Shown in pieces: positions 1,465 through 64,000 of a DNA stretch of 64,000 nt; positions within the stretch are counted from its first letter, which is position 1, and every line of letters starts with the position of its first letter. Origin of the DNA: Ranitomeya imitator (lineage: Eukaryota); contig NC_091282.1 of NCBI RefSeq assembly GCF_032444005.1, positions 247,690,001 to 247,754,000 of the forward strand, given 5' to 3'. Below the pieces are notes generated by a model, which saw only the letters and a program-made list of their open reading frames with translations, searched no databases and had not been told where the DNA came from. Both the position numbers and the translations under genes were made by a program.

Positions 1465-2593
1465 GTCTAAACTGTGCATTCTAAGGTCCTACTTGCTGAG
1501 CATTTGGCTGTGATGGAAGAATCTGGCAGAGCAGAGATCCCATCAGAGCAACTCCAGGTCCTCCATAGAGGAAGCATGCACATGCTTCTCCTTTAGGATG
1601 AAGTTCCCCTTCTGAACAAAAAGTGTTTTTCACTCTGTATTTTAGGACAGAGGAGCCTTTACCGCATCTGTAGCATCACCTAATGAGGATGGCAGGAAAG
1701 AGTCTGGGAAGCTTAGGAGGTGTGCCATCTGCAGCAGTAAATTTCCTGAAACAATTGGGGAAACCGTTATGTGAAAACTGTATTTCTAAGATCATCAGGG
1801 AGGAGCAATCATCTTTTCTAACAGACATGAGATCCATGATTAGAGAAGTACAAGCGTCTATCTCCATTCTCCTTTCCCCGCATTCATCTCAGCCTGGTTC
1901 CCGTGTTAAAAGACCATAGTGGGAGATGGAGTTGAGTTCAGAGGAAGAAGTACACTCCATCGGATCAGTAAGAGGAAGAAGAGCGTGCCTCAGACCCTCT
2001 GGAAGAAGGGAAGAAATACTACTTCTCATTGGAAAATACAGATGCACTCCTTCGAGCAGTCCGGAATACCAATAAGGTAGAGGAAGCTCAGAAGTCTCAC
2101 TCTATCCAGGATGAGATGTTCGGGGGCCTAAGGTCCCATAGACATTGTCTTTCTGGTAAACAACCACATTCGCGCCATAATTATGGAAAAATGGGAGGAT
2201 GTGGGAAAAAAAAGACCTCGTGACTTTAGGCTATGTCTGCTCTTTGAGCCAGAAGATCTAAAATCCTGGGAGAAGATTCCGAAGATGGATGTCAGGGTGG
2301 CCAAGAAAACATCAATTCCGTTTGAAGATTCTTCGAGTGTTAAGGAGCCCATGGGTAGGAAGACAAACTGCCTTCTAAAAAGGATCTTGGAAAACTAATG
2401 TAGCTGACCCTTCAGTTGCCAGATCCATGCAGCTGTGGATCGACGATCTGCAAGAGCACTTAAAGGATAAGACTTCTAGGGAAGTTATTTTAAGATTCCT
2501 TCCCTTACCCAAATTAGCTACAGGATTCATGGCAGACACATGTGCGGAATCGGTCAGATTTGCTGCCAGAAATGGTGCCCTCTAAAATGCTGC

Positions 2594-5500
2594 CTGACTG
2601 GCTATTTGAAACCTTAAACTCCCTCCTGAAACCTAAAGTACAGGCCCCCATCACCAATCTCAGTGGTGAGGATCTGGCCACTTATTTCCTAGAAAAAATC
2701 AACCACATCCATCAGGATATCTCAGCCCAATCTCCTCAGTGCCTGGATCCCCTTCTCTGCCGCACCTCAAGCTCACTAGACATCTTTGAGCCTGTTTCAG
2801 AAGAAGAAGTTTCCAAGTTCCTCACTTCTGCTCGGCCTACAACCTGCAACAGTGACCCCATTCCTTGACATCTCCTGCAGTCTCTCTCACCAGTGGTCAC
2901 CACTCACCTGACTAAAATATTTAACCTCTCTCTCTTTCTTCAGGTATCTTTCCCTCCTCATTTAAACATGCCATCATAACCCCTTTACTTAAGAAGTCAT
3001 CCCTGGAGCAGAACTGCACTGCTAACTACAGACCTGCCTCTAACCTTTCCTTCATCTCTAAACTCCTGGAACGCTTGGTCCACTCCAGTCTAATTTGCTA
3101 TTTCTCGGATAACTCTCTTCTCGACCCCTTACAATCTCGTTTCTGCTCTTTTCACTCCACTGAAACTGCCCTCACTAAAGTCTCTAATGATCTAATAACA
3201 GCTAAATCCAAAGGTCATTGCTCTCTGCTGATTCTCCTGGATCTTTCTGCCGCATTTGACACTGTGGGTCACCAGCTCCTTCTCACTATGCTCTGCTCCA
3301 TAGACCTCAAGGACACAGCCCTCTCCTGGTTCTCCTCCTACCTCTCTGACCGCTCCTTCACTGTATCTTTTGCCAGCTCCTCTTCCTCTCCTCGTCCCCT
3401 TACTATCGGGGTTCCGCAGGGCTCAGTCCTGGGCCCCCTCCTCTTCTCTCTATACACGGCCCCTATTGGAGAAACATTCAGCAGATTTGGGTTCCAGTAT
3501 CATCTCTATGCTGATGACACCCAATTATACACTTCTTCCCCTGACATCACCCCTACCCTAATTCAAAATACCAAGGATTTATATAACCTTTTTCAAGAGA
3601 GTCAAACTCCAACATATGATTTTCCAACGTTTTTTTCAAGATGGGAGAGTGACTTGGGGATTTCTTTGTCTCAAGAGGAGAGGGACAAGATTTTATTGTT
3701 CACTTTTAGGACCTCGTTGTCTGCTGTATCACAGGAGAGGAGTTACAAGGTTCTGTCGAGGTGGTATAGATGCCCTTGCCAGGTTCATGCTATGTTCCCG
3801 GCGATTCCGGATATTTGTTGGAGATGTGCATCAGAAAAGGGACATATGTTCATATCTGGTGGGAATGCCCGCCTATAAAGAAACTTTGGATGTTAGTTTT
3901 TGATCTTCATAATAAATTATCCATCCGCAAAATACAGCCCACAGTGGAACTAGCCCTTTTATCTCTGTGTGACCTATCGATCTCTGGGTTTAAGAAGAGT
4001 CTTCTCAGACATTTTCTCACGGCTGTCAGGAACTTGATTCCTCGATATTGGAAGCAGGATCGCTACCCCTCATGCTCCGACTTTGTTGAGGAACTAAACA
4101 TATACAGAATGGAACAATTGATAAGCGAATCCACTGGGGATTCTGAGAAATGTTATAACATTTGGGCTCCATGGATTGTATTCAGGGAGACTCCAGAGCT
4201 GGACGTGTGGCTGTCTGGATCCTAATCCATATCTGAAACCGCTCTAGATACATTCATAAAGATGCTGCCCCTATACCCTAGCCTACTGTCATGGCTTAAA
4301 AACCAATGCCGGCAATATACTGATTTTCTCACCGCTACACGGGGACTGGGTCTGCCCGGGGGGGCGGGGGGGGTCGCATTCCCCGTACTTATCGTACCCT
4401 CTTATGTCTACCCACTTTTCTTTCTTTTTTCCTCCTCTTTTCCTTTCTTAACTTTTTCTCCTTCTATCTACTTTTTCTACTTTTTCTACTTAGTGACATT
4501 CTCTACTAAAATAAACGATTAAATATAGCTAGTAATGCTTGATTGCCTTCGCTGTTGTTTTATATGTTTCAACAATGAAAGTTATTATTGCTAAATTGAA
4601 AGTGATATCATTGGCATTGGCCAATAGCACCCAAAACTCGCTGGGACTTTCTCTTCCTGCCTAAATTATGGGTTGTATTCTATTGAGCTTAAAAACTATG
4701 TTTCAGCATTGTTCCATTGCTTGTATTATCTATTTGCTTCAATAAACTTGATTTATACAAAATACCAAGGATTGTCTGTCTGCTGTCTCTAACATCATGT
4801 CCTCCCTCTATCTGAAGCTAAATCTGTCCAAAACGGAACTTCTTGTGTTTCTCCCTTCTACTACATCACTCTACCCAACATCGAAATTACCCTGGAGGGT
4901 TCAACTATAACTCCCAAGCAGCATGCCCGCTGTTTTGGGGTCATATTCGACACCAACCTTTCCTTTACTCCCTATGTCCAATCACTCACTTGCTCTTGTC
5001 ACCTGCATCTTAAAAACCTCTCCAGAATCCGACCTTTTCTCCCCTTTGAAACTGCTAAGACTCTTACTGTTGCTCTTATTCATTCTCGTCTGGACTTGAT
5101 CGGTCTCCCTCTTACCAAACTTTCTCCTCTCCAATCCATCTTGAATGCGGCAACCAGGGTCATATTTCTGTCCAGCCGCTTCACCGATGCCTCCATCTTG
5201 TGCCAGTCATTACACTGGCTACCCATTCGCTACAGGGTCCAGTATAAACTCATCGCTCTCACCCACAAAGCTCTACACAGTTCTGCACCACCTTATATCT
5301 CCTCTCTCATCTCTGTCTATCGCCCTACACGTGCCCTCCGTTCTACAAATGACCGAAGACTAACATCCCCCGTAATCCGAACCTCGCACCTCCGTCTCCA
5401 AGACTTCTCACGTGCTGCGCCAGCTCTCTGGAATGCACTTCCCCAGACGATCAGACTGATACCTAGCCCCGACCTATTCAAGGGCGCTTTGAAAACCCAT

Positions 5501-5903
5501 CTCTTCAAACAAGACTACCACATCAACTACTCAGTAAACTAACTTTGCCCTGTTCCCTCCTTCCAAATATTATTCTGAATCTGCACCCTACTATTCATCT
5601 GTCTCCACACCCTCCATACACACGATAACTGCACTTGATACTTGACTATTGCACTTAAACACACGGGCTGATGACCGGATCATGCAGCTTTATATGAAAA
5701 TCCCTATTTATTATAATTGCCAGACCTGAAATAACAAGCACTTCTCACCTATTGTGTCCCCCCCATTTCATTGTAGATTGTAAGCTTGCGAGCAGGGACC
5801 TTACCCCTAATGTCACTGTTTAAATTGTCTTAACTTGTACTGAATTTATTGTCTGTACATGTCCCCGCTTAATTGTAAAGTGCTGCGGAATATGTTGGCG
5901 CTA

Positions 5904-5948
<45 letters not shown>
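2594..5948 (+). mobile_element. 5'-truncated L2/CR1-clade LINE inserted in DIRS-A gag
   Basis: ORF2 RT motifs ([42 protein letters not shown]), C-terminal LHWLPIRYRVQYK, 3' UTR and (ATT)n tail at ~5903-5948. Frameshifted. Confidence 0.92.
3580..4757 (+). mobile_element. 3' fragment of an L1/Tx1-clade LINE inserted in the L2
   Basis: L1 ORF2 cysteine-rich C-terminus (DICWRC...HIWWEC), AATAAA at 4741, and a 16-bp target-site duplication CAAAATACCAAGGATT at 3564-3579 and 4758-4773. Removal restores L2 IQNTKD/CLSAVS. Confidence 0.9.
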
Positions 5949-5973
<25 letters not shown>

Positions 5974-7801
5974 CTTGAAAATGTGGTGTGGGGGTAGTCG
6001 AAAAGAAGTTCTATTCTATCCCCTTCTCAAGATCTAGAGTATTCGGGCCCGTGCTAAATAAAATTCTAGAAAAGGCATCTGACACCAAAAAATGGTTTCC
6101 TGAGGAGAAGGCCAAGAGCTATCAGCCCTTTCATAGGTCCCGCCCCTCCCAGGGACTGGGTTATAAAGTGAAAGGGAATTCTTTTTCTTAGGGTCAGGTC
6201 TGGGAAGATAATGTGGCGGTATGCGTCGAAGGGCAGCTAAAGTTGTACATAGAAGGTTGGCTGGAAGTTTCCCAGGATCAGTGGGTTCTAAAAACTATAT
6301 CTTCTGGGTATATGATAGAATTCATCCCGTTTCCACCCGGTAGTTTTATCCTGATTCCCAGTCCCCTGCCGCCGTCTCCCATGAGGTCAGACATACAAGA
6401 TCTATTAAAAGCTGGAGCAATAATCCTATTTCTTCAGGGGGAATGATTCTAGGGTCACTACTCGAGCCTTTTCTCCATCAAAGAACCCTCATTTGCGTCC
6501 TGTACGATAATAAATTTAAAACCTCTAAATTGTTGAGTCAGATGCAAAAGGTTCGTGATGGAGTCAATCAAGTCAGGGATTCCCCTGATAGACAGAGATG
6601 CGGTAATGTGTACATCAGATTTAAAAAAAAAAAAATACTTATATTACCATGTCCCCATTCATCCTTTCTGTCAGAAATTTTTAAGATTCGCCATAAAATC
6701 TCGGGATCAGATTCATCACTTTCAGTTTCAATGTCTTCCATTTGGCCTAGCCTCAGCCCCTCAGGCATTCAGGAATATGGTAGCGGAAATAGTGGCTAAC
6801 ATAAGGAGAGTAGGTATCGCCATAATCCCCTATTTGGCCGATTTTTCTAATAACCAGATCCAGTTACGAACTTCTAGAACATCTTCAGATCTCGATATCT
6901 ACACTTCAGAAGCTAAGTTGGATAACAAATTGGAAAAAATCAGACCTAGTGCCAGGAACCAGGAAAAATTTCCTGGGAGTTCTTAGACTTCTGCCTAATG
7001 ACCTCATTTCTACCAGTAGAGAAACAGAGATCCGTAAAAGACAGGATTAATCTGTTCTCATGAAATCGTTATTACATCAGAGCGGCAATGAGATTCTTGG
7101 GGATTAATGACAGCCTGCATCCACTGGGTTGAATGAAGTCATTTCCATTCACGAGAACTCCAAAAGGCCATTTTATTAGCCTGGGACAGATGGCAGGGTA
7201 ACTTTGGACAACAAGATGCCCCTTCCCCTTGCTGTAAAAAGATCCTTGGTCTGGTGGACTTTTCCACAGAACCTTCAAGTAGGGATCCCATGGATCTCCT
7301 CTCCATGCGTGTTGGTTGCCACCAACGCAAGTCAGTTAGGATGGGGTGGTCGTCTGGAAGGGAAATTTCTTCAAGGGACCTGGTCTCCAAGTTCGGTCCG
7401 ATCTTCGATTTACAGGGAGCTTTGTGCTGTATGGGATGTTCTTCAACAGATCCAGTCTCTAGGCAAAAACGGGCATATAAAGGTTCTGTTGGACAATGTA
7501 ACAGTATCCTTTCTACACCATCAGGGGTGACCAAGACATCTGTTACTACAGGGTCTAGCTACAAAGATTTTCCTTTGGGTATAGAGAACAGTTCTGTCTG
7601 TTTTTCAGCAGTCCACTTAGAGGGGGCCCAAAACCAGTTGGTGTATTGCCTAAGCAGTCTTTCTGACCAGGTAATATCCACCATATAGGCAAGCAGGAAG
7701 CTGGTTACATCAGCCATATACAGTAAAATCTGGAAAAGATTTGGTTTAGAATGTGGGGAATCTACGGTGGATATTTCTGGTCCAAAAATTCCTAGAATTC
7801 T

Positions 7802-7835
<34 letters not shown>

Positions 7836-8271
7836 GCAGGGTTCAACAAAGGTTTAAGGCCAAGCACATGAACGGTTCAAATTTCAGTTTTAAGTGTCTT
7901 CTTTGACTTTACCCTAGCCTCTCACCCCTGGATAGCCAGATTTTCTAGGGCAGTCCAGAGTCTAAAACCCTTGGCGAGGAAATCCATTTCATTATGGGAT
8001 CTGAATTTAGTACTTTAATGCAAACATCCCTACGAGCCTGTGAGTGATGTGAATATCCGCAGACTTTCCTTTAAAACTGCTTTCTTGGTGGCAAGTGCAG
8101 AGTTGTCTAACAGAGATCCGCAAGTTCTGCAAGTTTATGATGACCGAATAGTCTTCAGATTTGATCCGGCCTTCCTTCCCAAGGTATTATCTACCCCAAA
8201 TATGAATCAGGAGGTGGCCTTGATCTCCTATTAGCATCTCAAGAACCAGAAAGAGCAGTTTTACTCGGACT

Positions 8272-8363
8272 CCCATGACAGCACGACGAGAGAGGGGATC
8301 CGCCCATTAGGAACAGGAAACCTACAGATACAAAAGGGCGGTACCTCTCCCTTGCCTCAGTTG
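8272..8363 (+). repeat. DIRS-C left inverted terminal repeat
   Basis: Exact reverse complement of 13674-13765 (92/92, checked base by base). Confidence 0.97.
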
Positions 8364-8946
8364 GTTTCCTGTTCCTGAGGGGACGGGTGCCTACAGAAGG
8401 AGCCCCGGCCGGCCGATTACGGTAGCGGGGGGGTCTCCTACCTCGGCCGGTGCGGAGATCCCTGGAGACGCCACGGTGGTCTTTGCTGGATTGCACGTCG
8501 GTGGCGTTCGCAGCAGGGAGCAGAGTCCGGAGGATTTCCTGCATCCATCAGCGTCGGCGCAGGTAAGTATTTCCCATTGGTGGCGCAGCGGTGCGGCGTG
8601 GCTGCGGGTGTCGGGCTCAGATGTGTGGAGTGAGCTCCGGAGCGCTGCCGCTCCGTCCCCGGCGTTCTGCACCGCTCTCAGCGCGTGCTGGAGCGTTTCC
8701 GGGTGCGGTGACGTGGAGGGGCGGAGTTTGGTAGCCGCTTCCGGGACGCCGGACGTCTGCGCATGCGCGGTCGGTCCAAGATGGCGGCGCCCATCGCATC
8801 TGGACGCCGGTTCGTCCGCCAGCCCTCCTGCCCTCCCTGCTGTGTCCGCAGCCAATAGGGATCGCGCTGGCCCATCTGCTGACCGGATCCAAGGGGGATT
8901 TAAGCGGGTTACAATGTTAGAACCCTGCTTTTGGTCGCAATTCGTC

Positions 8947-10496
8947 ATGGAGAGTGGTGGTGAGCAGCAGCAGCAGCAACGGTCAGACGAGGTGCGTCAG
9001 AAACCCAAGAAAGATGGAGGCGACCAGCCCAGTCGCAAAAGCTCATCCGAACAGGGATCCAGAGCTTCGACTAAGAAAGAACCCCCTCGGATTCCGGTAC
9101 TTGACTTTGGCGCACGGGTAAGTGAAATACGTGAAAGTTCACTCTGTGACGCGGGCCCCTTATACTTTATTTTCCAGGGGAAGAAGAGTACGGACAAGTC
9201 AAAACATAAGGAGTGTGCCCTCTGTGGAGTCCCCTTACCTGACTCTTGTTCGAAAAAGTTATGTGCCCCCTGTATACAACAGACGGTGAGGTCTACAGGA
9301 GTGGTTGGGTGGAAGTGACTTTAGGTCAGATAGTGGTTATCACCTATATTGTCCTCCCCTAGGTAGCAGAAGAGTCCGTGAGTACGGCAAACTTAAAAGA
9401 AATGATCCGGCTAGAAGTAAGGGAGTCATTACGATCCCTATCCCAAGCGGAAGGCTCGAAGCATAGGACCCCTCTGGACTCTAATTCGTCAGAAGAGGAA
9501 AGAGAAGAAAGTACCTATCTCTCTATTCCTTTCTCCTCTTCATCAGATGAGGAGTCTGGACGATTTTGTCTACCCTTGGATAAGATTGACAGGGTGGTCA
9601 AATCAGTTAGAGGCACGATGGGTATAGAGGAACCCAAATCACAGCCCTCAAAACAGGAGTTGATGTTTAGTGGATTAGATCGTAAAAAACATAGATCTTT
9701 TCCGGTAAATGAGAAGATCCAAGAATTGATCCTCCGAGAATGGAAAAAAACGGAAAAAAAGGGGGCCTTACCGCCAGCTTTAAAACGCAGGTATCCCTTT
9801 GATGATCTGGTTGTGGATACGTGGGATAAAGCCCCTAAGTTGGACGCGGCAGTAGCAAAAGCGTCAAAGAAAGCCTCATTACCCTTTGAGGATATGGGGT
9901 CCCTCAAAGATCCTCTAGACAGGAAGGCGGATATCTTCCTAAAAGGTACCTGGGAGATGGCGGCAGGATCCCTCAGACCAGCCGTGGCCGCAACATGCAC
10001 AGCCAGGTCATTAATGGTCTGGCTAGATCAATTAGAGTCTCAGCTTAAGGACGGTGCATCCAGAGATTCTATTCTGAAAGCGCTACCGACAATTCAGAAT
10101 GCTGCGGCGTTCCTATCGGACGCATCTGTGGACTCTGTCAGAATGGCGGCTAGGGCGGCAGGACTATCTAACGCGGCTCGCAGAGCCCTATGGTTAAAGT
10201 GCTGGTCAGGTGACATTCAGTCCAGAACTAAACTCTGCGCCATTCCGTGCGAGGGACAATATCTCTTTGGTCCAACGCTGGATGAATTGCTGGAAAAGGC
10301 AGGCGATGACAAAAAGAAGTTTCCCAGTCTGTACTCTGCATCCTACCGCCGACCCTTTAATCGAAGAAGGTTTGGTCGCGGGAAGAAACGCGGGTCCTCT
10401 CCCACTAGAGAAAGTTTCAGATGGGAAGACAGACCCGGTAGAGGTACGGGCTACATGTTTCGCCGTTCCTCAAAGGATCAGAAAAAACCGGAATGA
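8947..10496 (+). CDS. gag: DIRS-C Gag (ORF1), predicted spliced: exons 8947-9117, 9178-9285, 9363-10496 (~470 aa)
   Basis: Phase-0 GT-AG introns 9118-9177 (GTAAGT...TTTATTTTCCAG) and 9286-9362 (GTGAGG...TCCTCCCCTAG). Splicing joins the CALC...CAPC zinc finger to the 372-aa ORF at 9378. The splicing is predicted, not observed. Confidence 0.8.
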
Positions 10497-12397
10497 CTAG
10501 CGATCCCTGTGGAGGATAGACTGTCAGCATTCTCCTCAGCGTGGCTTGACATTACGAACAGTAAATGGGTCAGAGGCATTGTTACTAAAGGTCTAAGGCT
10601 GGACTTCAATCATTGGCCTCGAGAAAAATTCAAATTAACCCCTTTTCGTTCCTCCCCCCTGGAGCAAGCAGCTCTAGAAGCAGAAGTCATGAACTTATGC
10701 TCTAAAAACGTATTGGTGGAAATCCCAGAATCAGAAAGAGGAAGGGGATTTTATTCTCCTCTTTTTCTGATCAAAAAGCCAGATGGATCTTTTAGAACGA
10801 TCATAAATCTAAAATGTCTTAATGAGTTCCTGGTTAATGACTCCTTCAAAATGGAAACAATTAATTCAGCAATAAAAATGTTGTTTAATCGCTGTTTCAT
10901 GGTAGTTGTAGATCTTAAAGACGCATACTATCATGTTCCGATACATGAAGATTTCCAGAGGTTCCTGAGAGTAGCTGTGTCAATGGGGGGTCGCATTCGC
11001 CATTTCCAGTTCAGAGCTCTCCCCTTTGGCTTATCAGCGGCTCCTAGGGTGTTTACAAAACTAGTGGCCGAGGTCATGGCGCACTTACGAGAGTCCGACA
11101 TCCTGATCATTCCCTACTTGGATGATTTTCTTATAGTAGGGAGCTCAGCAGACCATTGCCTGTCCCAGCTAGAAACAGCCACATCCAAACTTGAGCGTCT
11201 GGGGTGGATCATAAATTATGAGAAATCTCGTTTACAGCCTCAAAAAATACAAAGATTCTTAGGACTGTTATTAAACTCAGAATCCCAACAGTGTTGCCTT
11301 CCACCCGACAAATTATTACATATCCAGCAACAGGTGTCTAAGGCAATTGACAAACCATCCATGACCCTTAGACAGGCTATGTCACTATTGGGTTCCTTAA
11401 CCTCTTGCATTCCCGCTGTCCGTTGGGCCCAATTCCACACCAGACCGTTACAATCTGAGGTGCTGGTTAATGATAGAATCTTACAGGGGTCCCTGCAGAG
11501 TCAGATTACCTTAGGTCCAAAAGCACTCACATCTCTTAGGTGGTGGCTAGTCAGTGAAAACTTATCGGCGGGAGTTCCCTGGGTGTCACAGGTAACACGT
11601 GTTGTAACAACAGATGCTAGCCCTTCGGGTTGGGGAGCACACATGGATGACATGATGGTTCAGGGTCTATGGCCCCCTCCCCTAACATCAGCCTCCTCCA
11701 ACCAGAAAGAGTTAATGGCAGTAGAGCTTTCAGTGAAAAAATTCCTCATATATCTGCAGGGTCATCATGTCAAGATCCTATCGGACAACCAGGTGGCGGT
11801 CACATACATAAATCATCAGGGTGGAACTCATTCCGAGTCACTGATGAGAGTGGCGGAATGTCTGTTCCAGACAGCGGAAAATCACTTCTTATCCCTAACC
11901 GCTCTACACATAAGAGGAGAAAAAAAAAAAACGTCAAAGCGGACTTTCTAAGCCGCAACACCTTGAGGCAAGGGGAGTGGTCCCTAAACAATTGCGTGTT
12001 CGATCAGATTGTCCACAGATGGGGACATCCAGAAGTAGATTTATTTGCTACCAGGGACAACCGGAAGACAACAAAATTCTGTTCCCTAAATCCCAGGGAG
12101 AATCCTCTGGCGGTAGACGCTTTTCTGATCAATTGGGATTTTCAGCTGGTGTATGCATTTCCTCCACTAGGCCTGTTACCCTTAGTAGTCAGGAAGATAA
12201 GAGAAGATCGAGCCAGAGTTATATTGATTGCCCCATTCTGGCCCAGAATGGCCTGGTTCACTTGGCTCAGGATCATGTCAGTGGAGGATCCCTGGGTGCT
12301 TCCGGAGATTCCGGATTTGCTCTACCAGGGTCCGATCAGTCATCCGCAAGTAAAGAACCTTCATTTAACGGCATGGATTTTGAAAGGGCGTTACTGA
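10497..12397 (+). pseudogene. pol: DIRS-C ORF2: reverse transcriptase, RNase H and DAM-methylase-like domain, with one frameshift
   Basis: DLKDAYYH, FRALPFGL, YLDDFL (RT); TTDASPSGWGAH, ELMAV, SDNQVAV (RNase H); DLFA...YAFPP (MT-like). Frameshift in an A12 run at 11920-11931. Confidence 0.92.
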
Positions 12398-13401
12398 AAA
12401 ACAAAGGGTTCTCCCCGAGTTTAATTGAAACCCTTATGAAAAGTAGGAAGCAAATAACCACAACAATCTACGCTAGGACCTGGCGAAAGTTTCTGGCCTC
12501 TTCTGATTTCAATTTAGAAGAAGGAATACCTATAAAACAAATCTTAGAATTCCTGCAAAAAGGCTTAGTTAGGTCTATCCACTAGTACTTTAAAGGTACA
12601 GGTCTCGGCCCTAGCGGCTCTATTCTCCTGTAACATCGCCAATAATTACTGGATCTCAAGGTTCATTAAAGCATCTTGTAGGTCTAGACCCATACATAAA
12701 GATAGATCTATGCCTTGGGATCTCAACTTAGTCCTATCAGCATTGGCTAAAGAGCCGTTTGAACCTTTACGATCAGCTTCAATTAAGGCCATATCCCTTA
12801 AGACAGCATTTCTTGGAGCAATTACATCTGCCCGTAGAGTAGGAGACATACAAGCTCTCTCCAGGGTTTCCCCTTATACAGAGTTTCTACCAGACAGAGT
12901 AATCCTCAGACCGGACCCAGCCTATTTACCAAAAGTATCATCACGGTTTCACAGGTCACAAGAGATAATTTTACCATCCTTCCTCCCCAATCCTGCTAAC
13001 CCTAAGGAAGAACTACTCCATACATTAGACGTTAGGAGATGTCTGCTAGAATACATCTGTTACTGACACATGGAAGAAAGATGATGCATTATTTTTCTTT
13101 CCAAAATCCTAGAAAGGGACTCAGGGTATCAAAGTACACGCTAGCAAAGTGGATTAGGGAGGCTATCTCTTTGGTTTATGCTGCAGGTGGGGGTCCGGCT
13201 CCGCAGAATCTGAGGGCGCATTCCACCAGGGCCATGGCTACGTCCTGGGCGGAAAAATCTGGAGTATCAATCGACCAGATATGTAAGGCGGCCACATGGT
13301 CATCCCCGTCCACCTTCTTTAAACACCATAGGTTGGATTTGGGGGCTTCCTCTGATCTCACATTTGAGTTAAGGGTGCTACAAGCCATAGTCCCTCCCTA
13401 A
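11977..13401 (+). pseudogene. DIRS-C ORF3: tyrosine recombinase overlapping ORF2, disrupted
   Basis: SARRVGDIQAL and LRAHSTRA motifs. Frameshifts near 12570, 13050 and 13090. The expected catalytic Tyr (HY in DIRS-D) reads HH. Confidence 0.9.
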
Positions 13402-13423
13402 GGTACCTTACATCTCTGTAATT

Positions 13424-13507
13424 CTCTCGTCGTGCTGTCATGGGAGTCCGAGTAAAGCATTAAGCTACTTACTGGTAGCGGCATTTCTCGGAGGCCCATG
13501 ACAGCAC
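13424..13507 (+). other. DIRS-C internal complementary region (ICR)
   Basis: 13424-13456 is the reverse complement of 8260-8292, and 13457-13507 is the reverse complement of 13753-13803; the halves join at AAA, complementary to the TTT core. Confidence 0.97.
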
Positions 13508-13673
13508 CCTTAGTTCCCTCCCTATTCATGTGGGGGTTGCACTTCCTATAGATGTATATATCTCACATATGATACCCAGTTCCAAATATATGGCTGAAAT
13601 TTTGTATATAATCTGTATATAGTGTATATTTTTGTGCCACTAACCGCGGTAGTCCTCTCAAGACTCTGAAATA

Positions 13674-13806
13674 CAACTGAGGCAAGGGAGAGGTACCGCC
13701 CTTTTGTATCTGTAGGTTTCCTGTTCCTAATGGGCGGATCCCCTCTCTCGTCGTGCTGTCATGGGCCTCCGAGAAATGCCGCTACCAGTAAGTAGCTTAA
13801 TGCTTT
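13674..13806 (+). repeat. DIRS-C right inverted repeat plus right extension
   Basis: 92-bp inverted repeat, then a 38-nt extension ending ...AGCTTAATGC followed by TTT. Confidence 0.96.
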
Positions 13807-34958: not shown

Positions 34959-37900
34959 TATATATACCGGTATATATTTATTCAAACGTCCATAACAGCA
35001 CCACCTGAGAGGAGATCCGCCTTCAGGAACAGGAAACCTACAGATACAAAACGGCGGCACCTCTCCCACGCAACAGTTGGTTTCCTATTCCTAGAGGACA
35101 GGATGCCCTACAGATCGTCCATTTTTCGATCGTCAGGATTCCCAGGCCGGTTGTCCGGCTCAGGTAGAGGGGGGGGGGAGCGGGAAGGGGGGTTCCCTGG
35201 AAGCGCCACAACAGTGTGTGGAGCGGGGTCCGGAGGATTGCAGTCTCCAAAGCCAGCGCTGGAACGCAAGTATGCCCCCTGCTGGTGTGCTGTTCGGGCC
35301 TGTTCTGTGCACGGGGGGCCTGGCCGTGCCTTGGTGCTGCACCACTGTCCTCCTGCGCGTCCATTTGAGCTCCGGAAGTGACTGGGGGCCGGAAGTCAGA
35401 TGACGGCTGACTTTTTTTCCATGTGGGTGCCGCCGGGTCGTAGTGGTTTGGGCAGCGGGGGACGGAGCACGATGGGATGAACTACGGAGCGGGGAATTCC
35501 CTGGCTACACACACCCACCTGCTGACCTGGATTCTGGGGGAGGGCTATAAAATCCACATGACATGCTGCAGGGCTGCTTTTGGTCCATTGCAGCAATGGA
35601 TGAGCCAGAGGCTCCCTTGGAGCAGGAGCGTGCCTCAGAGAGGTCCCATGCAAACCCCCAGTTGAAAAACCGAGGACGAAGTGAGCAGCCTAGCCACAAA
35701 GGTTCTTCCAGGCTGAAGGATTCAGCTCGCTTCCCTGTGATCCGGTACCTACCGCTACTGCTTGGGTAAGAGATCTTTCGTGAATGTACCCTGATGCAGT
35801 GTTTCCCTTATTTATTTTTCTAGGGGAAGAAATGCTATGGTAAAACGAAAAACGGAATGTGCCCTTTGCAATTGCCTTTTGCCAGATACCTGTCCTAAAC
35901 TTGTTTGCAACAGACGGTAGGGGATTAAATAAAGATGGAGCAGTTGTCCTTAGTTAAGGCGTAGTCTTTAACTCTTTCCCCCACTTCTACAGGTGGTGGA
36001 AGAAACCCCTGACTTCACCGCAAGCCTAAGGGAGATTATTAGAATGGAAGTTAAGGATTCCCCAAAGTCCCTATCTCAAGGGGAATCTTCTAAGAAGAAA
36101 AGAGGAGCGAGTTTCTTAGGGTCAGAGTCCTCAGCTGCCCCTAGGAAAGGCGATTATTCTTCAGAAGCCTCTGCCTCTTCTTCTGCATCATCTTCAGAAG
36201 AGTACTCCAACTGTTTCTGCTTCCCCCTAGATCAGATGGCCAAGTTGTTCAAATCAGTAAGGTCCACTATGGGGGTAACGGTTTGGCGGCCTTGACCCTA
36301 AGAAATACAAATCTTTTCCGTTATATTACAAAGTTCAGGGCTTGATAACTATAGAGTGGAAAAGCCGGAAAAACGGGCTCTCTACCACCAGCCTTCAAGC
36401 GGAGATATCTCTTCGAGTACCCCTTGGTGAACAGATGGGATAAAGCCTCAAAGCTGGACGCAGCTGTAGCTAAAGCCTCCAAAAAATCCTCCATTCATTT
36501 TGATGATATGTCCTCCTTAAAAGATCCACTAAATAAGAAAGCGGACTCATTTCTGAAAGGGACGTGGGAAATGTCAGCTGGTACCCCAAGACCGGCGGTG
36601 GCTGCTACATGCACAGCCAGATCCATGATGGTCTGGCTGGACCAGCTTGAATCCCAGCTAGAAGATGGAGCCTCGAAAAATTCCATCTTAAAGTCCCTGC
36701 CAATAATTCAGAACGCCGCATCCTTTTTAGCCAATGCTGCGGCGGACTCAGCAAGGATGGCTGCCAGGGCCGCTGGACTATCAAATGCTGCACGAAGGGC
36801 TCTGTGGCTAAAGTGTTGGCCAGGGGACATCCAGGCCAGATCCTGTTTCTGCTCCATTCCATGTGAGGGAGAATATCTGTTTGGCCCGGATCTGGACGAA
36901 CTTCTGGAAAAAGCTGGAGACGATAAAATGAAATTCTCCAGTCTGCCGACCCCTTCTTAGACGTCCCTTCACCAGGAAAATATTTTTTTTCAAAGAAGGT
37001 CCAGAGATCAAGGCAGATGGGATGAAAAAAGGAGAGGTACTGGATTTATTTATTTAAGAAACCACACCAATGACTAGCGGCTGAGGTAGGCTAACTGCCT
37101 TCTACCCGGCCTGGTCCCTGACTTCTAATAGCAACTGGATTCTGGGGTTAATAGCCATGGGACTACGATTAGAGTTTTCCTGTATTCCTGAAACAGGTTT
37201 AAGATTACCCCACTCAGGTCTTCCCCATCGAAGCAGGCGGCCCTGGAAGTCGAAATTCATGACCTTTGCAGCAAAAAATCCTGACAGAAGTGCCGGAGGA
37301 AGATGGGGGGCAGAGGTTTCTACTCTCCTCTGTTCCTAGTCCGTAAGCCAGACTGCTCCTTTAGGACCATAATAAATCTGAAAGCCCTCAATGAATTTCT
37401 GGTCATACGGCCGTTTAAAATGGAATCAATCAATTCCACAATAAAATTGTTTGAAAACTGCTTTATGGTGGTATTAGATCTAAAAGACGCCTACTACCAT
37501 ATACCCATTCATGCAGCTCACCAGCAATTCCTTAGAGTGGCGGTTCATTTAGAGGGGTCGATCCGACAATTCCAATATGTTGCCCTTCCCTTTGGTATTG
37601 CAGTCGCCCCCCGAGTATTCACTAAGGTTATAGCTGAGGTAATGGCCCTTTTGCGTGAGTCAGTCATTCTAGTGATCCCCTACCTTGATGTCTTCCTTAT
37701 TATAGGCAAAACAGCGGCACATTAGTTGGAGCAATTACAAAAAGCAATGTCTGCCCTGGAGCGGTTAGGGTGGCTGCTAAACATCAAAAAATCCCGACTG
37801 CAGCCCATGAGAGTTCAGCAATTTTTAGGCCTAATCTTAGATTCCCAGAATCAGGAATGCCGTCTGCCTTCCAAAAAGTTAGTTCGCCTGCACTATCAGG

Positions 37901-38727
37901 TCCTGAGTGCCTCTAATAACCCCACCATGTCTCTAAGGAAAGCCATGTCTCTTTTGGGCTCTCTCTTGTCCTGTATTCCCGCGGTCCGGTGGGCCCAGTT
38001 CCATACAAGGAAACTACAGGGCGAGGTTTTGTTACGTCAAAAGATTTTGGGGGGTTATCTAGAAGGCCAGCTAACTTAATCCCGAAACGCTATAAAATCC
38101 CTCGATTGGAGGCTAGAGCGAAACAATCTAGCTAGAGGGGTACCCTGGGAATATAACATAACCCGTATAGTCACCACGGACACTAGCCCTTCCAGTTGGG
38201 GGGGCTCATATGGGTGAGGTTTTAGTCCAGGGATAGATGGCCTTCATCTGACGCGTGGATTTTGAACGGTCACTGCTGAAAGATAGAGGTTTCTCCCCAG
38301 GCTTGATTAATACCCTGTTTAAAAGCAGGAATGTAATCACTACCCAAATATACTTCAGAATCTGGAAAAGGTTCCTTCAGGACTCAGGGGTGGTAGCTGG
38401 TCAATCAACATCAATAAATCAGATTCTTGAATTCCTACAAAGAGGTCTGGACATGGGGCTATCCACTAGTACCCTTAAAGTGCAAGTGTCAGCCTTAGGA
38501 GCTCTTTTTAGCTGTAACATTGCCGGTAATCACTGGATCAATAGGTTCATTAAGGCGGCAAGTAGGTCCAGACCAGTAGTAAAAGATAGGTTCATGCCGT
38601 GGGATTTAAACCTAGTCCTCACGGCCATGACAGAGGCCCCATTTGAACCTATCTCAGCGGCCTCCATAAAAAAACCTGTCCCTCAAAGTAGCCTTCCTGG
38701 TAGCACTGACATCAGCTCGTAGAGTAA

Positions 38728-39123
38728 AGGTACCGTCACACTCAGCGACGCTGCAGCGATATAGACAACGAGCCGATCGCTGGAGCGTCGCTGTTTTAGG
38801 TCGCTGTAGAGACGTCAAACACAGCAACTCCATAACTATGCAGGAGCGATCCAGTGACGTAACGACGACTCACTTATCGTTCTCGCTGGTTGTTAGCTCC
38901 ATGCAAAATGTTGCTGGCATCGTTGCTTTTGATGTCAAACATGACGATACACGCCGACCTGACGACGAAATAAAGTTCTGGACTTCTAGCTCCAACCAGC
39001 GATGGCACAGCGGGATCCAGATCGCTGCTGCGTGTCAAACACAACGAGATCGCTATCCAGGACGCTGCAACGTCACGGATCGTTGTCGTTCTCGTTGCAA
39101 AGTTGCTGAGTGTGACGGTACCT
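38728..39123. mobile_element. Harbinger-like MITE, AGGTACC family, in the DIRS-D recombinase
   Basis: TAA duplication; removal restores TCA GCT CGT AGA GTA AGT GAC ATC CAG (SARRVSDIQ). Confidence 0.9.
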
Positions 39124-39135
39124 TAAGTGACATCC

Positions 39136-39360
39136 AGGCTTCCTCCTTATACACAATTTGGAGATGATGACCCTCTCCTAGTGTATCCTCACCCATCCCC
39201 TGCAGACTGTGAGCCCTCGCGGGCAGGGTCCTCCCTCCTTATCTACCGGTGTGCCTTGTTTTTTGCTCATGTTTAGTTGTATTTGTCTATATTTGCCCCC
39301 TTTTCACATGTAAAGCGCCATGGAGTAAATGATGCTATAAAAATGTACAATAATAATAAA
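39136..39360 (+). mobile_element. Short 3' end of an L2/CR1-type LINE in the DIRS-D recombinase
   Basis: GACTGTGAGCCCTCGCGGGCAGGG...TGTAAAGCGCCATGG...AATAATAATAA resembles the L2 3' end at 5770-5950; the recombinase resumes DRVILRPDP. Confidence 0.75.
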
Positions 39361-40280
39361 TGATAGAGTAATACTTAGACCTGACCCAGAATACCTGCCT
39401 AAGGTAGTCTCCAGTTTCCATAGAACGCAGGAACTAGTTCTTCCGTCCTTCATCCCTAATCCTGGTAACGAATAGGAAAAGAAACTCCACACCCTAGACG
39501 TTAGGAGATGTCTCCTAGAATACTTAGCAGTTATTGATCCCTGGAAAAAAGAGAACGCCTTGTTTGTCTCCTATCAGGGCACTAGGAAGGGGCCTTAGGG
39601 CATCAAAAATCATGCTAGCTAGGTGGATTAGGGAGGCTATTTCACCAGCATACATCTCGAAGGGCAGGTCGGCACCTGGAAGTCTGAGGGCGCATCCCAT
39701 TAGAGCCATGGCAACCTCGTGGGTGGAGAGATCGGAGGTTTTGATTGAAAAACATGCTTGGAGAGGGTCAAGTAGCTGCCTTACATATTTTGTCAATCAT
39801 TACAGACTAGATCCGGGTGCTTCCTCAGACCTCGCCTTTGGTGTAAGGGTGCTGCAGGCTGTAGTCCCTCCCTAATTAGTTATTACTCTCTGTAATTCTC
39901 TCAGTTGCACCTGTAGATTCCCTCCCTTCTTTTTTTAGTTCTGGGTGTGCACTTCCTCTTATGATCTACATTTTGGTGGAATAATTAATATTAATAGTAT
40001 TGTACATAAATCATGTCATTTACCTTGGTGGTCCTTTTGTGCTCTGTAATCCAACTGATGCGTGGGAGAGGTGCTGCCCTTTTGTATCTGTAGGTTTCCT
40101 GTTCCTGAAGGGAGGATCCCCTGTCTCAGGTGGTACTGTCATGGTGAGTAATTAAGACTTTTGGTTTGTGTTGCCATTTTCTGAGTCCTGTAGGAAAATA
40201 TTTTATTTTTTTATTTTTCCATTGAAGTGTGTGTGTGTGTTTTGGGATGCAGCCTCTGAGTGAACATAACTCAGCTTTTA

Positions 40281-54888: not shown

Positions 54889-57800
54889 GTGTGCCTAGTT
54901 CTCAACTGAGGCTGTCACAGTATAGCAGATAGGGTCGGACACAGAAGTAGTCTCTTATAGCCTGGGGCTGCCTTAGTTACTGTGTGTAATGCCACGCATT
55001 TACACAACAGCAAATAAGAATGGCAGCCCTCAGCGGCTCAGTTAGGAAGTTATAAAAAAAAAACACTTGACGCCATTTAATTTTATGCATTTATATATCA
55101 ACCTTTAAACATAAAGTCCAAATTACCTTTAAATCTACATTGCTATAAACATCATGGAAGAAATGTTATTCCCTCTTTGCGGCTCTTGAGCACATTTGTA
55201 ATCTATTGAAGCGCTGTGGTCGCCAGCCTTGTGGTTCTCCAACAGTTGCTGAACTGTAACTGGAATTTGTAATTATTTTCTAGGTTCTGATTATGTGGCT
55301 TGAAAAAATGGTCTGTCAATCACACTCTGAAAGGGTGGGGGAGTATTCTGAGCTCATCAATATGCCAGCTTTAAGGCCTTTGTGTCCTCAAGGCATGGTG
55401 TTCTTGGTTGCCAACTTATTAGCATATCGGGCACAAACATTCTACAACTGTACTCTTGAGATATCCTTGATTATTTTAGAAAACTAAGTCAACCTTAACC
55501 TCTGTTTATGTAACTGGTCGATAGTGGCGTTCGTGATCCTTTAACGAGGCTTTTGCTGCTCGCCGCTCTTCCAAAAGCCATGCTGGCAGTTTATGGATTC
55601 TGTCCATTTTTTAACATTGTCATTTCAACAATATTTTTATTTTCTATTAGATAAAGGTCCAGTATAATGTCTGTTTCTTTTGGGCTCATACTTTGCTTTA
55701 ATTATTATTTAGACAATGAAATATACCTAAATACCTTTGATCATTTTGTATTTTAGTATTAGATTTATAAGTTTTACTCATAGAAGCAATTACACAGGGC
55801 GTTGTCTTATATAGAGGTGTCGTTGTGTTAGGCCGGTGTCACACTTACAACTGCAATGCGAGAAACTCGCACTAAATACCCGACAATACCGCCAGCACTC
55901 GGGACTGGAGCGTTCAGCTGCATAGAAATATAGGACAAAAATACGTTTTCTGGAGGGCACCACAAAATGCATACGGGGATACACCTGAGGTCAATAAGAA
56001 ACAATCATAATTATGCATAGAAAAAGCTAAAGACCACAACAGGGATCACCACAAAATACAAAAAGGTTTTATTGAATACACAGCAGACAAATACCAATAA
56101 AAACATTTAAAAAGTCATAGACATGACATATGAACTACCCAAACGGCTTGTGATAGAGCCTAAGGACGTCCCTCAACAGGCCATGGTATATAAATATAAC
56201 AGAGATATTTACCAAGATATCAGTGCGTATCATGCAGAATGCACTATCCCATAAGACTAATATTGCACATTCAAAAGTGAAAATGCAGAAAATCATTTAG
56301 AAAAACAGTGATAGAATACTGCCTAAATCTCCTGTGTGTACAACCCATTCCCGATTCATATTCAAAGAGGTTGTGTCCAAGCTGCCTAAATCAGACCTTA
56401 CAGGACGAGGCTGCGGTTACAACCACTAATATCAGGGCCATAATTAGGCAGGAGATCCAATCTCTGGGATCAAAAAGCCTAAAAAAACAAGAAAGCAAAA
56501 GCTTTTCCCCCGTCTCCAGTTCAGAGTTTGAGATGGGCTTAATCCGTTCCTCCAGTACCTCAGGATCATCATCCAGTTCTTCTGAGGATGAGGGCGGAGC
56601 ATGCTTTCCAGTTGACAGCATAGACAATCTTATAAAATCCGTGAGAAACACTATAAGTTGTCCAGACACTAAGGGGGTCAGATAAGCACAGGATATTATG
56701 TTTGCAGGCCTAGGCCACAAAAAACGGCGAGCTTTCCCAGTCATTTCCGCCATCAAAGACCTTGTAAAAAAAAAGAATGGGACAAACAAGGTAAGGGGTT
56801 TCTCCAATCCTCTTCCAAAAGGCGTTACCCCTTCAGTGATGAAGAGTTAGCAGCGTGGTCCAAGGTCCCAAAAGTGGATGCGGCTGTGGCATCCACCTCA
56901 AAACAGTCATCTCTCCCTGTTGAAGATGCAGGAATCTTACTAGACCCATTAGACCGTAAAACCGAAGCTCTTCTTAATCCCATATGACGTACTATCCCAT
57001 CAAGGTGCCCTGGGACTCAATTCCCAGTGACAGGATAGTACGTCATATGCGATCGGCCGCGCTCACGGGGGGAGCGCAGCCGATCGCGGTCGGGTGTCAG
57101 CTGCCTATTGCAGCTGACATCCGGCACTATGTGCCAGGAGCGGTCACGGACCGCTCCCGGCACATTACCCCCCGGCACACCGCGATCAAACATGATCGCG
57201 GTGTGCCGGCGGTGCAGGGAAGCATCACGCAGGGAGGGGGCTCCCTGCGGGCTTCCCCGAGACCCCCACAGCAACGCAATGTGATCGCGTTGCTGCGAGG
57301 GTCTCCTACCTTCCTCCCTGCAGCAAGGCCCGGATCCAAAATGGCCGCGGCATCCGGGTCCTGCAGGGAGGGAGGTGGCTTACCAAGTGCCTGCTCAGAG
57401 CAGGCGCTTGGTAAGCCTGCACTGCTGTAAGTCAGATCGGTGATCTGACAGAGTGCTGTGCAAACTGTCAGATCAGCAATCTGTGATGTCCCTCCCCCCC
57501 CCCCCCCTCCCCGGGACAGAGTAAAAAAGTTAAAAAAAAAATTTCCACATGTGTAAAAAAAAAAATAGAAAGAAAAAATTCCTAAATAAAGAAAAAAACT
57601 GAATCCCATAAATACATTTCTTTATCTAAATAAAAAAAAACAATAAAAGTACACATATTTAGTATCGCCACGTCCGTAACGACCCCACCTATAAAACTGT
57701 CCCACTAGTTAACCCCTTCAGTAAACACCGGAAGAAAAAAAAAGAGGCAAAAAACAACGCTTTATTATCATACCGCCGAACAAAAAGTGGAATAACACGC

Positions 57801-58446
57801 GATCAAAAAGACGGATATAAATGACCATGGTACCGCTGAAAACGTCATCTTGTCCCGCAAAAAACGAGCCGCCATACAGCATCATCAGCAAAAAAAAAAA
57901 GTTATAGTCCTGAGAATAAAGCGATGTCAAAATAATTATTTTTTCTATAAAATAGTTTTTATCGTATAAAAGCGCCAAAACATACAAAAATGATATAAAT
58001 GAGGTATCACTGTAAACGTACTGACCCGAAGAATAAAACTGCTTTATCAATTTTACCAAACGCAGAACGGTATAAACGCCTCCCCCAAAAGAAATTCATG
58101 AATAGCTGGTTTTTGGTCATTCTGCCTCAGAAAAATCGGAATAAAAAGCGATCAAAAAATGTCACATGCCCGAAAATGTTACCAATAAAAACGTCAACTC
58201 GTCCCGCAAAAAACAAGACCTCACATGACTCTGTGGACCAAAATGTGGAAAAATTATAGCTCTCAAAATGTGGTAACGCAAAAAATATTTTTTGCAATAA
58301 AAAGCGTCTTTCAGTGTGTGACGGCTGCCAATCATAACAATCCGCTAAAAAACCCGCTATAAAAGTAAATCAAACCCCCCTTCATCACCCCCTTAGTTAG
58401 GGAAAAATAATAAAATAAAAAAAATGTGTTTATTTCCATTTTCCCG

Positions 58447-58720
58447 TTAGGGTTAGGGTTGGGGCTAGGGTTTGAGCTAAAGTCTGGGTTAGGGTTGGGG
58501 CTAAAGTTAGGGTTAGGGTTGTAGCTAAGGTTAGGGTTGGGGCTAAAGTTAGGGTTAGGGTTGGGACTAAAGTTAGGATTTGGATTACCTTTACGGTTGG
58601 GATTAGGGTTTGGATCAGGGTTAGGGGTGTGGTTAGGGGTACTGTTGGGATTAGGGTTAGGGGTGTGTTTGGATTAGGGTTTGGGGTGTGTTTGGATTAG
58701 GGTTTCAGTTAGAATTGGGG
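58447..58720 (+). repeat. Degenerate TTAGGG-like repeat inside the piggyBac-like element
   Basis: GTTAGGGTTAGGGTTGGGGCTAAA-type units. Confidence 0.85.
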
Positions 58721-58729
58721 GTTTCCATT

Positions 58730-60050
58730 GTTTACGCACATCAGGGGCTCTCCAAACGCAACATGGCGTTCGATCTCAATTCCAGCCAATTCTGGTTGTA
58801 AAAGTAAAACAGTGCTACTTCCCTTCTGAGCTCTCCCGTGTGCCCAAACAGGGGTTTACCCCAACATATGGGTTATCAGCGCACTCGGGACAAATTGGAC
58901 AACAACTTTTGGGGTCCAACTTCTCTTGTTACCCTTGGAAAAATAAAAATTTGGGGGGCTAAAAATCATTTTTGTGGGAAAAAAGATTTTTTATTTTCAC
59001 AGCTTTGCGCTGTAAACTGTAGTGAAACACTTGGGGGTTCAAAGTTCTAACAACACAACTAGAAAAGTTCCTTGGGAGGTCTAGTTTCCAATATGGGGTC
59101 ACTTGTGGGGGGTTTCTACTATTTGGGTACATCAGGGGTTCTGCAAATGCAACGTGACGCCTGCAGACCAATCCATCTAAGTCTGCATTCCAAATGGCGC
59201 TCCTTCCGAGCTCTGCCATGCGCCCAAACAGTGGTTCCCCCCCCCCCACATATGGGGTATCAGCGTACTCCGCACAAATTGGACAACAACTTTTGGGGTC
59301 CAATTTATCCTGTTACCCTTGTGAAAATACAAAACTGGGGGCTAAAAAATCATTTTTGTGAAAAAAAAAAAGAATTTTTATTTTCACAGCTCTGCGTTAT
59401 AAACTGTAGTGAAACACTTGGGGGTTCAAAGCTCTCAAAACACATCTAGATAAGTTCCTTAGGGGATCTACTTTCCTAAATGGTGTCACTTGTGGGGGGT
59501 TTTAATGTTTAGGCACATCAGGGGCTCTCCAAACGCGACATGGTGTACCATCTCAATTCCAGTCAATTTTGCATTGAAAAGTCAAATGGCACTCCTTCCC
59601 TTCCGAGCTCTGCTATGCGCCCAAACAGTGGTTTATCCCCACATATGGGGTATCGGCGTACTCAGGACAAATTGCACAACAACTTTTGTGGCCGAATTTC
59701 TTCTCTTACCCTTGGGAAAATAAAAAATTGGGGGCAAAAGATCATTTTTGTGAAAAAATATGATTTTTTATTTTTACGGCTCTGCATTATAAACTTCTGT
59801 GAAGCACTTGTTTGGTCAAAGTGCTCACCACACATCTAGATAAGTTCGTTAGGGGGTCTACTTTCCAAAATGGTGTCACTTGTGGGGGGTTTCAATGTTT
59901 AGGCACATCAGGGGCTCTCCAAACGTGACGTGGCGTCCCATCTCAATTCCAGTCAATTTTGCAAGTCAAATGGCGCTCCTTCCCTTCCGAGCTCTGCCAT
60001 GCGCCCAAACAGTGGTTTATCCCCACATATGGGGTATCAGCGTACCCTTG
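58730..60050. repeat. ~390-bp tandem repeat (about 3.5 units)
   Basis: G(C/T)ACATCAGGGG anchor at 58736, 59127, 59513 and 59903. Confidence 0.88.
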
Positions 60051-63756: not shown

Positions 63757-64000
63757 CCCCTTTCTGCCATTAGACGTACTATTCCGTCCATGTGGGGTGG
63801 GCCCTACTTCCCAAGGACGGAATAGTACGTCATAGGCGATCGGCCGCGCTCACGGGGGGAGAGCGGCCGATCGCGGCCGGGTGTCAGCTGCTTATCGCAG
63901 CTGACATCCGGCACTATGTGCCAGGAGCGGTCACGGACCGCCCCCGGCACATAAACCCCCGGCACACCGCGATCAAACAATCGCGATGTGCCGGCAGTCC
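63757..64000. mobile_element. Left end of another piggyBac-like element in the DIRS-E recombinase (runs off the window)
   Basis: TTAA (63753-63756) followed by CCCCTTTCTGCCATTAGACGTAC; same family as 56978-57200. Confidence 0.85.

Follow-up and report, generated by a model that had tools for sequence, protein, structure and literature searches.

The stretch of DNA analyzed here comprises 64,000 nucleotides (nt) of the Ranitomeya imitator genome (NCBI RefSeq assembly GCF_032444005.1, contig NC_091282.1, positions 247,690,001 to 247,754,000 of the forward strand). We call it the window, and its positions are counted from its first letter. It contains element C, a DIRS1-like retrotransposon (order DIRS) whose gag gene lies at 8947-10496. 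On the basis of this gene, its relatives in other frogs, database gene models and contigs of public sequencing runs, we consider it probable that gag of neobatrachian DIRS1-like elements carries genuine U2-type spliceosomal introns, and that the spliced pool of the transcripts is translated and the unspliced pool is copied. Retrotransposons are expected to lose introns, being copied from RNA, and HUSH-type defences exploit this intron-lessness.

Reading frame and splice junctions of gag

All features of the window described here lie on the forward strand. Exon 1 of gag (8947-9096) supplies the start codon and a low-complexity leader of 50 amino acids (aa), a further in-frame ATG being present at 8914. 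It is followed by intron 1 (9097-9177; 81 nt, GT..AG, phase 0), inside which a second, stronger in-frame donor is found at 9118, and by exon 2 (9178-9285; 36 aa), which encodes a zinc-ribbon-like CxxC-x11-CxxC finger. The homologous part of the Ranitomeya Gag model P0007 gives a weak match to DZR_2 (E = 0.003), under the family cut-off. Intron 2 (9286-9362; 77 nt, GT..AG, phase 0; ACG|GTGAGG...CCCCTAG|GTA) separates the finger from exon 3 (9363-10496; 377 aa), which encodes a LAP2alpha-type Gag body and ends with the stop TGA at 10494-10496. The pol open reading frame (ORF) for reverse transcriptase (RT) as well as RNase H, at 10509-11951, is in the same frame as exon 3 (both 9363 and 10509 are divisible by 3), with the TGA standing between them.

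The frame is broken at intron 2: the zinc-finger frame stops at 9316-9318, and the gag frame has a TAG at 9360-9362, the AG of which is the acceptor of intron 2 itself. Without splicing, the frame opened by the ATG at 8947 is closed after 123 codons, and a search with the 123-aa product of this unspliced ORF (8947-9315) gave no protein match. Removal of both introns leaves one frame of about 463 codons (50 + 36 + 377), a figure obtained by arithmetic and not from a constructed joined sequence. Only spliced RNA would thus offer a single frame leading from the start codon through the zinc finger to Gag. Because pol follows in the gag frame after the TGA, pol or any Gag-Pol likewise depends on the upstream splicing, so that the spliced RNA serves Gag and any Gag-Pol and is not the separate gag-only mRNA that the initial annotation of this DNA had supposed.

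Contigs of four public runs (X1, X5, X6 and X10) were placed on positions 8300-13700. Two runs from different studies, X1 and X6, contain the joint 9285|9363, which skips exactly 77 nt and has GT..AG ends, and X1 also contains the joint 9096|9178, a GT..AG skip of exactly 81 nt with a side of 50 letters; the joint 9117|9178 was found in no contig of the four runs. The same sites appear in the NCBI model P0035, which represents a sister copy of the C family in R. imitator. Its protein (...KEPPRIP|GKKSTGKSKHKEC...CAPCIQQT|VAEESV...) joins RIP|GKKS and CIQQT|VAEESV, corresponding to the upstream donor of intron 1 and to both acceptors. The gene range of P0035 is 843 nt and its coding sequence (CDS) 684 nt; the excess of 159 nt, about 82 + 77, equals two introns, which indicates that the gene ranges run from start codon to stop codon. 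Single-intron lengths in other models are given below as gene span minus CDS, a difference that tells the length of an intron and not its site.

The initial annotation had placed intron 1 at 9118-9177. The letters of this 60-nt segment (GTAAGT...TTTTCCAG|GGG) and the start ATG at 8947 are as it gave them, and its acceptor 9177|9178 is the one used, but the donor in both the X1 contig and P0035 is 9096|9097 (CCG|GTACTT), 21 nt upstream. Its intron 2 at 9286-9362 agrees exactly with the joint in X1 and X6 and with P0035, and the two stops that it had noted, one of the zinc-finger frame at 9318 and one TAG of the gag frame upstream of exon 3, are those described above.

The unspliced form is represented by a 763-nt contig of X10 over 9019-9750 (depth 264), which is unspliced across both introns. 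This contig is cDNA, since it bears the template-switch oligo at its 9019 end and a run of A at an internal A-rich stretch near 9750; the position of the A-run shows that priming took place inside an unspliced molecule, so that this is no true transcript end. Unspliced contigs are deeper than joined ones, where depth gives no ratio of the two forms and read-through from host genes may add to the unspliced signal. Among the gag indels listed for the contigs of the family, two common 1-nt insertions fall within intron 1 (9170, 9171) and exon indels are of 3 nt (9402, 10491), which is the pattern expected of a non-coding intron 1.

Splice-site strength was scored with a rough matrix, a strong pair being defined by a donor score of at least 8.5, an acceptor score of at least 4.5 and a spacing of 50-120 nt. 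On the plus strand of the 5.5-kb element C there are two such pairs, both of them the proposed gag pairs, and five are present in the whole window on both strands (0.039 per kb). The intron acceptors of C rank in the top 0.2-1.2% of the AG sites of the element, with a pyrimidine tract before the AG. It is hardly credible that these are chance GT..AG pairs or annotation artefacts with no introns behind them. Short GT..AG pairs of low stringency are indeed frequent in the window (0.58 per kb), but at the high-stringency density two pairs nevertheless stand within 250 nt and exactly at the frame breaks, exact joints exist in public data, and the position is conserved in four families, as described in the following section.

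Homologous introns in other families

Copy D of the window has GT-AG segments at the same two places as C. Its exon 1 (35596-35744; 149 nt) meets TAA at 35767-35769 when read unspliced, and its intron 1 (35745-35823; 79 nt, or 58 nt from a second donor at 35766) is in phase 2 and is not a multiple of 3, so that splicing is needed to reach the zinc-finger frame. Intron 2 of D (35917-35992; 76 nt) occupies the same site as in C and has a diverged interior. The flanks in D are CAACAGACG|GT and AG|GGGAAGAA, and its exons 2 and 3 are out of frame owing to a deletion in the second CxxC. In copy A, a homologue of intron 1 with a weak donor is found at 1558-1645 (88 nt), preceded by an exon 1 at 1513-1557. 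Outside the window, contig L003 of Engystomops pustulosus, which has open gag and long pol ORFs, shows an ATG at 530, 16 codons, a donor CCG|GTAATT at 578 and an acceptor TTTTAG|GGA at 663; the resulting 86-nt intron 1 contains internal stops and an in-frame TAG at the acceptor.

When C, D, A and L003 are aligned, a donor TCC(G/A)G|GT and an acceptor YAG|G stand at the same place in all four, and the lengths of intron 1 are 81, 79, 88 and 86 nt, respectively. In D, A and L003 intron 1 breaks the frame and a stop is met no later than the acceptor; in these three the zinc-finger exon lacks its own ATG. A frameshift or re-initiation between the zinc-finger ORF and the gag ORF was considered and rejected, because the joints are exact GT..AG joints and because the zinc-finger exon is startless in these three families.

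Site 2 is continuous, i.e., intron 2 is missing, in A, in L003 (CPSCISKIMAEES), in copy E and in the Logan contigs L001 and L002. In E the zinc finger and the Gag body are uninterrupted (56287-56450), site 2 falling between 56397 and 56398. L001 and L002 are continuous at both sites and represent either spliced RNA or intron-less families. Full-length Gag models of Ranitomeya have one intron each (78 nt in P0007, 85 nt in P0005, 89 nt in P0006 and 87 nt in P0017), and the Bufo bufo model P0029 has one intron of 77 nt; the identical Bufo Gag protein occurs on 8 contigs, with the same span of 1418 nt at each of the three places shown. Models P0022 and P0009 are uninformative on intron number, their 3' ends being chimeric. 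A search with the N-terminal part of P0035 matched P0035 itself and one chimeric model only.

To place these families, we used a Gag tree of 23 rows from a quick IQ-TREE search under LG+G4, in which D and E are represented by their uninterrupted ORF pieces only (47% and 36% of the kept columns, respectively). C, D, P0001 and P0002, a model of Dendrobates tinctorius, form one clade with a value of 98 in the Shimodaira-Hasegawa-like approximate likelihood ratio test (SH-aLRT), nested among one-intron lineages. Outward from this clade come P0006/P0003/P0022 as its sister, P0005/P0007/P0009, a group with E, and Engystomops. Intron 2 has the appearance of a gain, since its sole bearer, the C/D clade, is nested within lineages that have one intron; and since the one-intron relatives have no amino-acid gap at site 2, its 77 nt appear to be a pure insertion. 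Intronisation of coding sequence was rejected as the source of intron 2 on this latter ground. The most economical reading of the tree is that intron 2 is a single later insertion in the ancestor of the C/D clade. Intron 1 appears to be old, since four diverged families share its position, and two of these come from different frog families.

The initial annotation had spoken of two conserved introns, and this wording suits intron 1, ancient and widely shared as it appears to be, and does not suit intron 2, the later gain of one clade. Its segments in D with their flanks, the continuity of E across site 2 and the GT-AG segment with a weak donor in A, which is the positional homologue of intron 1, were all recovered, and phase 0 for intron 1 of D has to be corrected to phase 2. 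It had also regarded the intron interiors of C and D as unrelated. This is right for intron 2 (54% identity vs 49% +/- 3 in shuffles) but not for the core of intron 1 (9118-9177 vs 35766-35823), where identity is 67% vs 48% +/- 4 in shuffles. With exon identities of 55-60%, this core is the best-conserved segment between the two copies, which hints at a cis-acting element inside the intron.

Tandem donors were observed in C (9097-9123), D (35745-35771) and L003 (578-596), where a near-consensus donor (GTAAGT, GTAAGA or GTGAGT) comes 13-21 nt after the weak, in-phase donor that is used (CCG|GTA); the strong second donor of L003 is out of phase. Such a second donor could be a decoy or a site that recruits U1.

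Two proposed pools of RNA and competing readings

Introns have been retained through transposition in every copy examined, namely C, D, A and L003, and in the C family P0035 is a second copy that has both of them. As new copies keep their intron or introns, the RNA that is reverse-transcribed would have to be the unspliced one. We propose that the element divides its transcripts into a spliced pool that would serve translation and an unspliced pool that would serve replication; in this scheme we infer the joined form to be the translated mRNA and the unspliced RNA to be the template, and the partition between them would matter for fitness. The initial annotation had combined an unspliced genomic RNA and a spliced mRNA into a switch between translation and replication. 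The retention of introns in the copies and the existence of unspliced cDNA agree with its two kinds of RNA, and a regulated switch between them is conjecture.

A TATA-like box, identified by reading the letters and by comparison with D and L003, is present at 8897-8904, and a leader motif common to C and D (CTGCTTTTGGTC) at 8925-8936, about 20 nt 5' of the ATG. A TATA-like box together with a pyrimidine-rich motif is seen about 20-50 nt before the gag ATG in C (8897-8936), D (35543-35585) and L003 (480-529). The region 8897-8936 may be an internal promoter and mRNA start region, about 650 nt inside element C. With a promoter so placed, the full-length template RNA would need another start site, and it is a matter of speculation that two start sites might give RNAs of different fates, as in BARE.

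Several points weigh against the introns as delimited here or against the roles that we propose for the two pools. Translation of the spliced RNA and export or packaging of the unspliced RNA are presumed steps. Intron 1 of C, whether counted as 81 or 60 nt, is in frame and contains no stop, and the ORF 8476-9318 spans 9118-9177, so that its splicing is not required for the reading frame in copy C; the 60-nt segment alone proves nothing. The observed donor of intron 1 (GTACTT) is weak, in the 86th percentile, and the strong donor 21 nt downstream (9118, GTAAGT) has no junction support. Each junction is represented by one low-depth contig per run (depth 5-9), the joint of intron 2 has only 26 letters on its short side, and the contigs carry no information on strand, tissue or ratio. 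Some part of the NCBI models may come from ab initio prediction. In older R. imitator models, 9363 is joined to the downstream donor or to GAG|GTGCGT at 8992, so that the zinc-finger exon is skipped, and an internal ATG at 9405 could yield a Gag devoid of the zinc finger from unspliced RNA. Finally, the label of X1, X5 and X6 is no more than 'RNA? (a guess)', and should the two junction-bearing runs be DNA, the joints would represent genomic copies without the intron and not mRNA.

The uncertain label of these runs is the starting point for the explanation that the joined forms are DNA, that is, genomic copies lacking intron 2 or intron 1 which arose from spliced RNA or from an intron-less ancestor. 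The same runs do hold non-canonical deletions that are differences among copies, 10769|10845 with its AT..CC ends and high depth being an example. We find this explanation quite improbable, because both joints end exactly in GT..AG and agree with the NCBI model, and because runs whose contigs total 70-145 Mb and reach 8-17 kb at most would fit transcriptomes of a multi-gigabase genome better than DNA. Even if the contigs were DNA, the precise loss of the segments would be a footprint of splicing.

The 10769|10845 skip itself (75/76 nt) occurs at high depth in X5 and X6 and also in X1, and it appears to reflect a deletion in a subfamily, close to where RT begins, and not an intron. X1 further contains two non-canonical joints, 8946-9746 (799-nt skip) and 8947-9468 (520-nt skip), both starting at the gag ATG, which could be deletion derivatives or template switches.

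It may also be supposed that the splice sites are incidental and are used mainly in host-gene chimeras, Gag being made from unspliced RNA at the ATG of 9405 and the zinc-finger ORF being separate or unused. Many older Ranitomeya models are in fact host-DIRS chimeras that use these sites, and among the NCBI models is a 364-aa Gag that begins at MIRLEV (P0001). Nevertheless, the zinc finger is conserved in all families and yet is startless in D, A and L003, the position of the intron is kept across families that are only 30-50% identical in Gag, and the one-intron layout recurs in the Bufo family with an identical Gag on 8 contigs; we therefore judge this supposition very unlikely. The chimeras of the older annotation include P0012, P0016, P0020, P0023, P0024 and P0040-P0044, several of which join the leader straight to the Gag body. 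These joins are unverified, and the DIRS splice sites may either feed host transcripts or mislead annotators.

A further explanation accepts the introns as real and holds that they are kept for a boost of expression or export, or for shelter from HUSH-type silencing, the unspliced template being a by-product. In all families, intron 1 is no farther than about 170 nt from the inferred start site, and introns shield reporters from HUSH in human cells, even when unspliced (PMC8770142). Between C and D, conservation is higher in the intron 1 core than in the exons, which suggests that the intron sequence itself is functional. Against this, the gag introns are far shorter than those tested in that study, and stuffers with splice sites that were effectively spliced gave no protection (PMC8770142). 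The literature searched holds no HUSH data for frogs, and the splicing-dependent open frame is left unexplained. As the full account of why the introns are kept, we think it unlikely, and the division of the transcripts into a translated and a copied pool is the interpretation that we retain.

The element and its relation to known systems

A tblastn map gave four DIRS1-like copies in the window: A (about 1500-8230), which is decayed and belongs to a distant family; C (8254-13783), a near-complete element of 5.5 kb; D (35596-39872), which is decayed; and E (56287-63770), which is 5'-truncated and interrupted. Element C is bounded by inverted terminal repeats at 8254-8363 and 13674-13783 (110 nt, 95% complementary), and has an internal complementary region at about 13423-13507, whose arms 13423-13456 and 13454-13507 match both termini at 100%. 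In Pfam searches, RVT_1 (E = 5.6e-22) and RT_RNaseH (E = 8.7e-07) were detected, and the Gag body was assigned to the LAP2alpha type (PF11560, E = 1.7e-20); a Phage_integrase match (E = 0.18), which would point to a tyrosine recombinase in place of a DDE integrase, is under the cut-off. A putative C-terminal recombinase block of the HSTR...HY type can be aligned with D and L003 and is split over two frames in C. In this block C has His where D and the Engystomops element have Tyr. In C, gag is open, the pol and recombinase part is spread over several overlapping frames (11669-12585, 13039-13401), and copy C, which displays the introns best, is not itself competent for mobility.

The proteins closest to the Gag of C are NCBI models of R. 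imitator (95% identity) and other dendrobatids named 'lamina-associated polypeptide 2-like', and the LAP2alpha domain derives from DIRS ORF1 (PMC4495291). A host gene or a domesticated gag was rejected as the identity of this locus, since terminal repeats, pol and many copies are present. Element C resembles Dictyostelium DIRS-1 and the Xenopus DIRS elements in its inverted repeats and internal complementary region, RT/RNase H, methyltransferase-like region, putative tyrosine recombinase and LAP2alpha-type ORF1 (PMC9210276, PMC4495291). Unlike the frog gag with its introns, ORF1 of the described DIRS1-like elements is given as a plain ORF, and the sole intron in a DIRS-1 mobility study is one engineered into a marker cassette. 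The word 'intron' was absent from the DIRS literature searched, which covered Xenopus families, a eukaryote overview, fungi, kinetoplastids and the origin of LAP2alpha, and wider full-text searches likewise gave nothing; the older DIRS literature, e.g., Goodwin and Poulter (2001), may hold a mention.

Retroelements that keep introns and depend on splicing are known outside this order. Ogre has an intron between two ORFs which is spliced in a subset of transcripts, so that the whole polyprotein can be translated (PMC6317226). The likeness is that genomic copies keep an intron in the coding region, with spliced RNA translated and unspliced RNA copied. Ogre is, however, a Ty3/gypsy element of plants (legumes) with long terminal repeats and an integrase, in contrast to a vertebrate element with a putative tyrosine recombinase. 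Its intron lies between gag-protease and the RT-RNase H-integrase part and Gag is made from unspliced RNA, whereas the frog DIRS gag is interrupted near its 5' end, by one intron or two, and the unspliced RNA would encode a stub of 123 codons. In addition, one DIRS lineage appears to have gained a second intron.

Penelope-like elements (PLEs) also keep introns through retrotransposition, and a conserved intron near their 5' end overlaps the promoter region; this retention is ascribed to an unusual mechanism, and PLEs are called 'highly unusual among retroelements' in this respect (PMC8557442). Most ORFs of the Naiad and Chlamys PLEs are uninterrupted, with a conserved intron of unknown significance in the 5' untranslated region (PMC8557442). 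PLEs differ from the frog elements in belonging to another RT clade and in having a target-primed mechanism and a GIY-YIG endonuclease.

In BARE1 of barley, with an intron of 104 nt, and in copia of Drosophila, splicing gives a dedicated mRNA, and the RNA pools for translation and replication are distinct (PMC3735527). There the unspliced RNA encodes the full polyprotein and the spliced RNA Gag only, and the frog DIRS arrangement is the reverse, as its unspliced RNA cannot encode Gag. Retroviruses likewise have unspliced genomic RNA beside spliced mRNAs and must export intron-containing RNA; in contrast to the frog elements, their unspliced RNA is the mRNA for Gag and Gag-Pol, and splicing serves env and the accessory genes. 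Intron-keeping, splicing-dependent retroelements are thus known, and within the literature searched they are not described in the DIRS order.

A broader proposal, which we put forward tentatively and consider rather doubtful as a whole, is that neobatrachian DIRS1-like elements are obligately intron-bearing. An intron of 77-89 nt between the start-codon exon and the Gag body would predate the split of dendrobatids, leptodactylids and probably bufonids, and the second intron would have been gained de novo. Incomplete splicing, possibly together with two start sites, would split the transcripts into translated and copied pools, and the intron may shield the element from silencing.

For annotation, these results are a warning that DIRS calls based on ORFs, in which ORF1 is taken as one open frame, truncate Gag and miss the zinc finger. 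Strong splice sites in thousands of copies may also feed chimeric host transcripts. If the proposal is true, DIRS elements would be the third independent case of intron keeping after Penelope-like elements and Ogre, and the first such case in which Gag itself needs splicing, and they would document the gain of an intron inside a retrotransposon. They would represent a different solution to the problem that one transcript has to serve both translation and reverse transcription, and would allow the escape of unspliced RNA from nuclear retention to be studied in a natural setting that has no known system of the Rev/constitutive transport element type.

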